From contig NC_134033.1 in NCBI RefSeq assembly GCF_964204645.1, positions 16,252,655-16,316,654 on the forward strand: a DNA stretch of 64,000 bases, read 5' to 3'. Both the position numbers and the translations under genes were made by a program. Source of the DNA: Tubulanus polymorphus. Taxonomy: Eukaryota; Animalia; Nemertea. The notes beneath the pieces were generated by a model. The model ran no database searches. It saw only the letters and a list, made by a program, of their open reading frames with translations, and had not been told where the DNA came from. Of this stretch, positions 3,501 through 6,500 are shown piece after piece (the stretch's first letter is position 1; every line of letters begins with the position of its first letter).

Positions 3501-6500
3501 GTAGAGGGTGTATTTTATTGCGGTGATGGTTGAGAAATGTTTTCAGGTATCGATTCCCGGCTGGAATCATTAAGTGTTCAATGACTTTTTAACCCCTGGG
3601 GTCAGTTGTTCAAAAGCTGGTTAAAGATAACCGGTGGATAAATACCATAGTAACAATGTAGTTTTAATTGTCACTGTACCAACTATCCACTGGTTAACTC
3701 TAGCCAACCTTTGTCCACTGGTTAACTCTAACCAACCTTTGTCCACTGGTTAACTCTAACCAACCTTTGTCCACTGGTTAACTCTAACCAACCTTTGTCC
3801 ACTGGTTAACTCTAACCAACCGTTGTCCACTGGTTAACTCTAACCAACCTTTGAGCAACTGGCTCCACAGTTGACCTGGTTCCACAGTTGTGAGTTAAAT
3901 GTCAGAGTTAAAATGAGTTGTTAATTTCTAGGGATTTAGAGTGAAAACTGTGGAATCGGGTCCTATTGAGAATGGATACGTGTTCAGTGTGTTTATATTA
4001 AAAGACTTAAGAATTTCTTTGGAATTTTCAGTCTTTCTGTTTCGTAAAGTTAAGTCTTGCAACAGTGTAAAAACAGATCTGATAACCTAATCTGATTCAT
4101 TTTCAATTCTAAAAATAACAAGTCACAGTTCCACAGCTCTTGGTAAAGTTTGACTCTTGAATAAGGATAGTTCATTCGTTTGAATCTAGTCGTAGAACAT
4201 TGGAACCGGACCCTGATTTTGATGTGAAATAACTCCAGTTTGTGGACTGTGAAAAAGAGATTGCCAGTCGCTCATTAGCCAACCGTGGATAAATGCCAAT
4301 TGAAAATCCATATCAGGGGCTGCAGTTGCTCAAAAGTTGGTTAAAGATAACCGGCGGATAGATACCGTAGTAACAATGAACTTTTAATGGTCACTATGTC
4401 AACTATCCACTGGTTAACTCTAAACAACTTTTGAGCAACTTGGACTGTAAAAAACTGAAACGAGATCAACCCGATCAGAACCTGTCACAGTCTGTTTTTT
4501 GTCAATCGTATGAATATTTATGTTTTCAGTAAGGAGATGAAGTGGGTATTGCGATGTAACTACGCCAAAGCCGTCAATATGATGCCGTATTTCGTCGCGC
4601 CGAAAATCATCATATTTTTCACGTTTTTGGCGTACGTGCTCGGCGGCGCGGTGATCACCGCCGAGAAGGCGTTCGTCGTCGTGGCGTTGTACGATTCGAT
4701 ACGCGTCGCGATCACCGTCTTCTTCCCGTACTCCATTCAATACGGCTCCGAAATATACGTTACTTTGAATCGTATACAGGTAAACAACGCCCCCTGGTGT
4801 CCGCGTCGCGCGTCGCTCCTTCGTGGCGCGCGCTTTGTCTCGTCGTGTTACGTGTCGAAATATTCGTCGTACTTACATAAATTCAAATTTAAAAAGTCTT
4901 AACCCTTTCAGTGCGTGTACCCTCCGGTGCAGTGTATCCATGTAATAGATGGTTAGTTCGTGTACCCTCCGGTGCGGTGTATCCATGTAATAGAAATGTC
5001 AAGATGGCAGCGTGATCATTGTGAGATATCAGTAAATAGGGATACACCGCACTGCGAGGTAGACACATAATAATGGTGTGTTGGTTACTTTCAATGCGCT
5101 GCGGGAAGACGAAATGTAACAGTATGTCTGTTATACACTGCACTGTGGAGTAGACACCATGTGTGTCTGTTATACACCGCACTGCGGGATAGACACCATC
5201 TACGTCTGTTATACACCAGACTGCGGGGTATACACCATCTACATCTGTTATACACCGCACTGCGGGGTAGACACCATCTACGTCTGTTATACTCCGCACT
5301 CTGCTGCGAGGAAGTTGTCAGCAGTGGAAGGGTTAAGTCGAATTTTTGATCGATGTGTCGTCTACGGCCTTTATTTCGATAGTGTACTTGGTTTCGATAT
5401 TATATTTTATACTCGTTTCGATAAACATCGCATGTGTCAGACGGTGAAACTCGCTGGTAGTCGATTCGGACTGATAACTTACATTAAGGGAATTGAATTA
5501 GAAATACAAATTCGGGCCCAGTTTTATAGACTGGTATCATCTTTAACCCACAGGTTGCATCAACTAAAAATGAATTGAGTTAACCCCCGGGTTTAAGTTG
5601 ATACCAGTCTATAAAACCATGCCCATGGTTTGAGTTTTGTTTAAATCCGAGCGAGTTTGACTGTTATTTGTTATATTTGCATGTTTTGGTATATAGTCTC
5701 TTATTTACGATGCTGTACGGTCATCATTGCATCACTTCATTTTTTTAGCTTCATTTTTCTCAACGTTTTAGATTTTTGTTTTACCGCGGCATGGTTTATT
5801 TAGTTTCTAAAGTAGGTGGCACCACCATTTAATGCTTATTCGGCATTATCATTGCTTGTGCGTCCGGGGTGTTTTACCCCCCTGTCTCTATCACCCCCCC
5901 CCCCTTGTATCCGGTGTTGTGCGTGGTGTGTTTGTCGTCTGTGCGTGTATGTACTGCAGCGTCGCCCCCTATATCACCCGTCTGCCTCTAGTACTAGACG
6001 TAGTAACAGCGCCACCTGGTGTGGTGTTTATGTTTTGCAGGCGTGAACTACGGCGTATCTATACGGCTAAGTCGATCACAGCGGTTACGAACGGCGTCAT
6101 ATTTTGCGCGTCTAAATTGATAATTCTAGTGATAATAGTAACGTCCGTATTAACGGGTAATAGAATGTACGATATCGGGCAGTTGTATTCAACTATGATT
6201 TGGATTAATATTCTCCGTGGTTCAGTGATTAAACGCACTATTCTCGCGATCAGGAATATCGCTGAATTATATACTTCATTGAAACGTATTCAGGTTAGTG
6301 CAGTGCTTATTTCATTGATTGATCATTTGATTGATTAATTGATTGGTCAGTTCATTGGCCATTTAATTGATTGGTTATTTGTTTCGTCAATTTATCCCTA
6401 TTGATCAATTTGTTTAATTGATCAGTTCATGACAATCATTGATCGGTTTGTTTGAACATTTTGATTGATCAGTTCAATTATCAGTCTGATCAATCAGTTC

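Follow-up and report, generated by a model that had tools for sequence, protein, structure and literature searches.

The stretch of the Tubulanus polymorphus genome considered here (contig NC_134033.1, positions 16,252,655 to 16,316,654 of the forward strand) is 64,000 nucleotides long and is referred to as the window; positions are counted from its first base. It contains a gene for an ABC transporter of the ABCC family in which two neighboring exons, called exon A and exon B, appear to encode alternative versions of transmembrane helices 5 and 6 (TM5 and TM6). Exon-sized open reading frames (ORFs) along 544-19600 follow the order TMD1-NBD1-TMD2-NBD2, in which TMD stands for transmembrane domain and NBD for nucleotide-binding domain. 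The Walker A motif of NBD1 (GPVGSGK) lies at 7804-7824, and ABC signature motifs are present as LSGGQRARV in the ORF at 8483-8713 and as FSVGQRQL in the ORF at 16884-17147. Pfam detects ABC_membrane and ABC_tran on the exons flanking A and B.

The identity of the gene was addressed by searches run exon by exon, and exons were joined only for a local translation that served as a frame check. In four separate exons the top match in the PDB was ABCC4, clearly above ABCC1, ABCC2, ABCC5, CFTR, and YCF1. The strongest of these matches is that of exon A, whose translation gave a gap-free alignment with human and bovine ABCC4 over residues 305-387 (E between 7e-18 and 6e-17), and ABCC4 chains were the only PDB chains above threshold. 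The exon for TM7-8 matched ABCC4 with an E value of 2e-12, compared with 1e-6 for the next family, and the exon at the start of NBD2 also matched ABCC4 best (E 1e-9). The fourth is an exon with the N-terminal lasso motif, whose best match was ABCC4 residues 22-49 (E 2e-6). It lies outside the window, ~1.35 kb before position 1, and its alignment fits a short ABCC protein, which would lack the extra N-terminal domain TMD0. No first coding exon was located when the 10 kb farther upstream of the lasso exon were scanned with a crude motif filter only. Judged by its best structural matches in four exons, the gene is an ABCC4-type transporter, as an earlier note on this DNA had proposed. The same note had placed the variable exons at TM5-TM6. 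This assignment is borne out for exon A, as ABCC4 residues 305-387 comprise TM5, the loop, and TM6, and the pocket residues discussed below lie in TM5 and TM6.

Exons A and B lie between two constitutive exons, and all four are read from the + strand. The upstream constitutive exon (2994-3119) encodes the end of TM4 and an intracellular loop of TMD1 (Pfam ABC_membrane positions 170-203, E 5e-6). It ends with FGDLVKFVR followed by AA, i.e., two bases into a codon, which would be completed as AAT (Asn) with exon A or AAG (Lys) with exon B. Exon A (4530-4779, 250 nt) encodes the canonical TM5-loop-TM6. It is preceded by tttatgttttcag, its acceptor tract at 4517-4529 consists of the 10-mer TTTATGTTTT followed by CAG, and its boundaries read ttttcag/TAAGGA and ATACAG/gtaaac. 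Exon B (6041-6293, 253 nt, 84 codons plus one base) is the diverged alternative. It is preceded by tttatgttttgcag, its acceptor tract at 6027-6040 consists of the same 10-mer followed by GCAG, and its boundaries read ttttgcag/GCGTGA and ATTCAG/gttagt. Both A and B have an ordinary U2-type donor. Exon B has a further GT 9 nt past its donor (after 6302, within 6294-6304); this GT is in frame, would add three residues, and is a possible alternative donor. The downstream constitutive exon (7618-7824) encodes the linker between TMD1 and NBD1 and the first part of NBD1, as far as the Walker A motif (ABC_tran, E 8.5e-4). It begins in phase 0, and its donor GT is at 7825-7826.

Both exons have AG and GT sites, are entered in phase 2 and left in phase 0, contain no stop codon, and end in the residues RIQ. 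Their lengths are both 1 mod 3. In the local frame check, A alone or B alone allowed translation to read through into NBD1. When A was joined to B, the second codon of B was read as a stop (GCG TGA); when both exons were skipped, a stop occurred after three codons. The coordinates, phases, splice sites, open frames, and stops thus agree with the frame-enforced, tandem-duplicated exon pair that had been claimed earlier. Steric exclusion as the reason for choosing only one exon is ruled out because the intron between A and B (4780-6040) is 1261 nt long; it is full of tandem and inverted repeats.

The stop created by joining A to B also suggests a different function for exon B. In this explanation B would be mainly a regulatory 'poison' exon, whose inclusion together with A leads to a stop and whose transcripts are degraded by nonsense-mediated decay (NMD), lowering the output of the transporter instead of providing another protein isoform. 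Donor and acceptor sites of ordinary strength agree with such a role. However, a poison exon has no need for an open frame, for homology to TM5/TM6, for a preserved hydropathy profile, or for the RIQ ending, and the frame that is kept open in B differs from the frame in which B is read after A. A mainly regulatory role for exon B is therefore quite improbable.

Evidence for the common origin of the two exons comes from several comparisons. BLASTP aligned the translations of A and B with 24% identity (E 1e-4). Their global alignment, with 23% amino-acid identity, required a single one-residue indel, located in the TM5-TM6 loop, and scored 50 compared with 13.8 +/- 5.3 for shuffles of B (z 6.9, with none of 2000 shuffles scoring as high). 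In a six-frame tblastn search of the window, A and B were each other's best non-self match (E 0.06-0.3), and no third copy was found. Exon B keeps the ASK motif in TM5, the TM6 arginine that corresponds to R362 of human MRP4 (hMRP4), and the E..Y..L.RIQ anchors together with the terminal RIQ. The interval 3120-7617 contains 32 AG..GT segments of suitable frame and length class; once the segments that overlap A are set aside, A-like sequence is confined to those that begin at 6041. Beyond the window, no close copy of A or B was found elsewhere in the 268-Mb genome, and an ABCC1-like paralogue fragment had no second copy within +/-1.5 kb.

Could the likeness of B to A be fortuitous? An intronic frame may happen to be open and to be flanked by suitable AG and GT dinucleotides. 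The weak BLAST-level similarity seen by tblastn in the window is consistent with this, as is the failure of Pfam and the PDB to recognize B alone. However, none of the shuffled sequences matched the global alignment score, and, A itself aside, no other frame-compatible segment of the interval resembles A. Moreover, it lies in the right place with the right phase and length, its anchors are kept, and its neighbors in a protein-language-model search are ABC transmembrane fragments. Chance is a very unlikely explanation. On these sequence comparisons, exon B is best described as a very diverged homologue of exon A, with a homology that is weak but real.

Is exon B maintained as a coding exon, or is it what remains of one? 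The main rival explanation is that B is an unused relic of an exon duplication, a pseudo-exon that may once have been alternative and is so far free of stops and frameshifts. The two explanations differ in what should have been retained at such a low identity. The probability that an 84-codon frame is open by chance at this composition is 0.003-0.004. Neutral sequence at 23% identity should not have kept its frame (P ~0.003) together with its splice sites, its length class, and the further features given below. The identity between A and B at codon positions 1, 2, and 3 is 0.39, 0.52, and 0.33, compared with 0.27, 0.29, and 0.23 expected by chance. The hydropathy of the two translations is correlated residue by residue (r 0.51), and none of 5000 shuffles reached this value. 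An identity that is highest at position 2, together with hydropathy that tracks along the alignment, is a pattern of protein-level constraint rather than of neutral decay, as far as sequence can tell. The order of identity among codon positions (2 > 1 > 3) and the hydropathy profile are among the features that a relic should not have retained all together.

The base composition of exon B bears on the same question. Among 253-nt windows of the 64 kb, its observed/expected (o/e) ratio of CpG, 2.25, ranks at the 99.5th percentile, and that of exon A, 2.18, at the 99.1st. The introns flanking B have ratios of 0.47-1.15. The acceptor 10-mer, TTTATGTTTT, occurs only once in the 64 kb besides its two copies in front of A and B, a total of three compared with 0.66 expected. 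A CpG ratio in the top 0.5% and a shared acceptor 10-mer complete the set of features that, taken together, is not expected of a relic. The GC content at third codon positions (GC3) is 0.43 in B, below the value of A (0.75) and those of neighboring exons, and this speaks for the relic. However, it falls within the range of the constitutive exons of the gene (0.38-0.75), and low GC3 was therefore rejected as a sign of decay.

A comparison of individuals was also possible. Run X3, from a second individual, has ~40 differences in the non-coding parts of 2976-8760 and none in A or B; the single difference in other exons, at 7815, is synonymous. The flanking introns are ~1% polymorphic. In the 253 nt of B ~2.4 variants are expected, and their absence is suggestive at most (P ~0.09). 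Structure prediction and embedding-based searches gave signals of their own. In the protein-language-model search (ESM-Atlas), B adjoins clusters of ABC_membrane and SbmA_BacA fragments at 0.95-0.96 (recognition 2601). An AlphaFold2 (AF2) single-sequence model of B has helices at residues 2-38 and 46-83 joined by a 7-residue loop, with a mean predicted local distance difference test score (pLDDT) of 80.

Taken together, these intrinsic signals favor exon B as a maintained coding exon. The earlier argument that a frame left open despite deep divergence points to selection is strengthened by the codon-position, hydropathy, CpG, 10-mer, and polymorphism signals.

The CpG ratio was also informative across the window as a whole. 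Its median over all windows is 1.0, and windows with a ratio of at least 1.8 largely correspond to coding exons, for example at 8101-8403, 9601-9928, 10376-10828, 18951-19628, 24226-25228, and 26051-26703. Several high-CpG windows, such as 20301-20653 and 27676-28003, were not matched to any exon. A high CpG ratio could serve as a cheap exon indicator for the Tubulanus polymorphus genome.

A number of results weigh against a used and maintained exon B, and some of them are what the relic explanation predicts. Exon B is far more diverged than A from every ABCC, and its TM6, with four basic residues, is far less hydrophobic than that of A; both features also fit relaxed constraint. By sequence, exon B found no PDB match even at E <= 10, and a Foldseek search with the AF2 model of B likewise found none. 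Pfam did not recognize A or B when either was searched alone. The hydrophobic moments of TM5 and TM6 are no different from those of shuffled sequences in A or in B. The small number of variants expected in B, noted above, sets a further limit.

The species' only RNA-like run (2015) gave no match on the 5.8 kb of 2960-8760. The four runs that contain exon B, all from one study, are genomic: their contigs cross the introns, and joints occur only in repeats, with no splice joints. A B-type orthologue or isoform was not found in protein or metagenome searches, although these blanks are weak evidence. A phmmer search of exon B against 1.84 billion representatives returned two matches, both repeat-protein artefacts; a 23-bit similarity is too low to reach significance in a library of this size. 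Word-indexed protein searches gave no match for exon B among proteins of 65-206 aa and none for exon A among those of 72-227 aa, and a scan of metagenomes from the Joint Genome Institute (JGI) gave no match. The protein searches are blind to isoforms merged into clusters represented by A, to full-length proteins (owing to the length window), and to unannotated relatives. The lack of a transcript or orthologue of B in the runs and libraries searched also counts for the relic. With the retained frame, codon-position pattern, hydropathy, and acceptor on the other side, the relic explanation is possible but rather doubtful.

The explanation that best accommodates these findings, and one that is probably correct though well short of certain, is that exons A and B form a two-member, tandem-duplicated, mutually exclusive exon cluster in an ABCC4-type gene. 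In this model the exon that ends at 3119 would be spliced, in each mRNA, to either A or B, and the chosen exon to the one that starts at 7618. The reading frame itself would enforce the exclusivity, as inclusion of both exons or of neither leads to a stop within four codons. Such mRNAs would presumably be removed by NMD or would yield a truncated protein. Inclusion of exon A would produce the canonical ABCC4-like TM5/TM6, and inclusion of exon B would keep the helix-loop-helix layout but replace the residues at pocket-lining positions. That B is spliced in, that NMD acts on unproductive mRNAs, and that the two forms differ in function are inferences.

How might one exon be selected over the other? 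An inverted-repeat search of the locus found no convincing docking/selector RNA pairing, which is a further point against the model. Two weak pairings were noted. The segment 3370-3393 is 79% complementary over 24 nt to 4950-4973, downstream of A, and the segment 3382-3396 is 87% complementary over 15 nt to 6554-6568, downstream of B. A single stretch upstream of A (3370-3396) could thus face sites downstream of both exons, which is the geometry of a docking site and its selectors, but the pairings are weak. They are short, lie inside introns rich in high-copy inverted repeats and tandem repeats, and could be due to chance, and they are not taken as evidence of a docking/selector system.

The positions at which A and B differ can be compared with the ligand pocket of hMRP4. 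Residue i of exon A corresponds to ABCC4 residue 304+i, and exon B is shifted by one after the loop. In hMRP4, F324, L363, L367, and F368 line the ligand pocket; they were named for the binding of prostaglandin E1 (PGE1) and sulindac and were tested by mutagenesis (PMC10202912). F324 in TM5 is replaced by Y in exon A and by I in exon B. The three positions in TM6 (L363, L367, and F368) are V, V, and F in exon A and G, K, and R in exon B. R362 in TM6 is kept as R in both. A helical wheel of B places K64, R71, E75, and G60 within ~40 degrees of the L363/L367 face. R71 is a further arginine that B adds on this helical face.

The predicted effect of the swap is a B isoform with a more cationic cavity wall and less bulk at the L363 position. 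The B isoform would probably differ in substrate range or kinetics, because its cavity wall is predicted to be more cationic and smaller. A stronger claim is that exon B is in use and gives an isoform, specific to this lineage, in which the TM5/TM6 pocket wall has changed from hydrophobic to cationic; one gene would then provide pumps that differ clearly in anion selectivity. In its detailed form, lysine and arginine substitute for L367 and F368, glycine substitutes for L363, and a further arginine follows two helical turns on. This stronger claim is unlikely. TM6 of CFTR, an ABCC channel, is poly-basic, and under the cationic interpretation TM6 of exon B would resemble it. If that interpretation were true, the gene would provide a natural test of the way in which TM6 determines the specificity of ABCC4.

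The gene contains a second candidate pair of mutually exclusive exons farther downstream. Two segments of 80 nt each, at 11430-11509 and 12434-12513, follow the exon ending at 10776. Both have AG and GT sites and the same phase, and they encode a TMD2 segment of the form ..LNxF..D.G..D..LP.., in which 8 of 26 residues are common to the two by eye. As 80 is not divisible by 3, inclusion of both or of neither would shift the frame here as well. BLASTP gave no alignment between the two exons at such a length. Copy 1 has weak matches to CFTR and ABCC2 at the equivalent position (E 0.5-0.8); copy 2 had no match in the same kind of search.

The introns of the gene are rich in repeats. Short inverted-repeat elements resembling miniature inverted-repeat transposable elements (MITEs) lie at 4324-4440, 5514-5624, 3826-3861, and 7254-7615, and similar elements occur near 10860-11120. 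In the genomic runs these elements reach word depths from thousands to 190,000, compared with ~30 for unique sequence, indicating very high-copy repeats. Tandem repeats at 3686-3853, 5126-5300, and 6309-6618 include arrays of 28 nt x6, of 39 nt x4.5, and of units like GATTGATC. The length of the GATTGATC-like array differs from one individual to another: runs X1 and X2 have a 62-nt skip (6460>6523), and run X3 has an 8-nt insertion after 6326. A long, CT-rich, low-complexity intron tract at 1800-2400 gives rise to spurious frames of at least 200 aa on both strands (SLSLPL and EGER repeats). Downstream of the transporter gene, the segments 24987-25235 and 25901-26632 on the + strand belong to a neighboring gene with a ..YRGGSSFFGE.. 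motif and a 243-aa ORF. Read by eye, the gene at 24987-26632 looks like a carbohydrate sulfotransferase.

Exon swapping in ABCC genes is known from other animals. According to Grailles et al. 2003 (Gene 307:41), as cited in PMC2680897, the Drosophila gene dMRP (CG6214) has two variable internal exons. Exon 4 has two variants and exon 8 seven to eight; PMC6071210 lists an 8-exon MRP(8) cluster, and an '8a 4b isoform' is named in PMC6185855. dMRP resembles the Tubulanus gene in belonging to the ABCC family and in having tandem internal exons that are chosen singly. Its two clusters in one gene also have a candidate counterpart in Tubulanus if the 80-nt pair is counted. However, dMRP is long and ABCC1-like, whereas the Tubulanus gene best matches ABCC4 in four exons. 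The choice in dMRP reportedly depends on competing intronic RNA pairings, whereas none of those in Tubulanus is convincing and the reading frame alone would enforce exclusivity. Furthermore, the Tubulanus copies, with 23% identity, are far more diverged than the dMRP copies.

A second comparison is with mrp-1 of Caenorhabditis elegans, in which exons 13A, 13B, 13C, and 13D have been experimentally confirmed as mutually exclusive, homologous tandem exons (PMC4165533). Like the Tubulanus gene, mrp-1 encodes an ABCC transporter with a cluster of homologous tandem exons. It is a nematode MRP1-type gene with four such exons of 156 nt each; as this length is a multiple of 3, the frame does not enforce exclusivity, unlike in the Tubulanus pair. 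Amino-acid identity among its copies is 50-60%, far above that between A and B. More generally, the summary of Yue et al. 2017 (RNA Biol 14:1399) contained in a section of PMC6071210 reports multiple independent exon duplications with convergent splicing in the MRP genes of different metazoan phyla. As far as this summary goes, the Tubulanus pair falls under such a general phenomenon. The novelty attributed to it earlier was therefore too high, since tandem exon arrays in the MRP genes of several phyla had already been published (PMC4165533 and the cited section of PMC6071210). In the literature searched, ABCC4/MRP4 was not linked to mutually exclusive exons in any paper, and no counterpart of the alternative TM5-TM6 exon turned up for vertebrate ABCC4. 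If exon B is used, the Tubulanus pair would extend the recurrent exon swapping of ABCC genes to a nemertean gene of ABCC4 type, without establishing a new principle.

The closest structural comparison is with ABCC4 itself. Exon A is gapless to residues 305-387 of the human and bovine structures (for example, 8bjf and 8swn; E about 1e-17), and at positions where hMRP4 has L367 and F368, exon B of Tubulanus has K and R. If exon B is used, one gene would provide two ABCC4 pumps, identical except for the helix pair that lines the cavity. Their difference would fall exactly at the hMRP4 ligand-contact residues known from cryo-EM and mutagenesis, making the locus a compact natural swap experiment on substrate choice by ABCC4.

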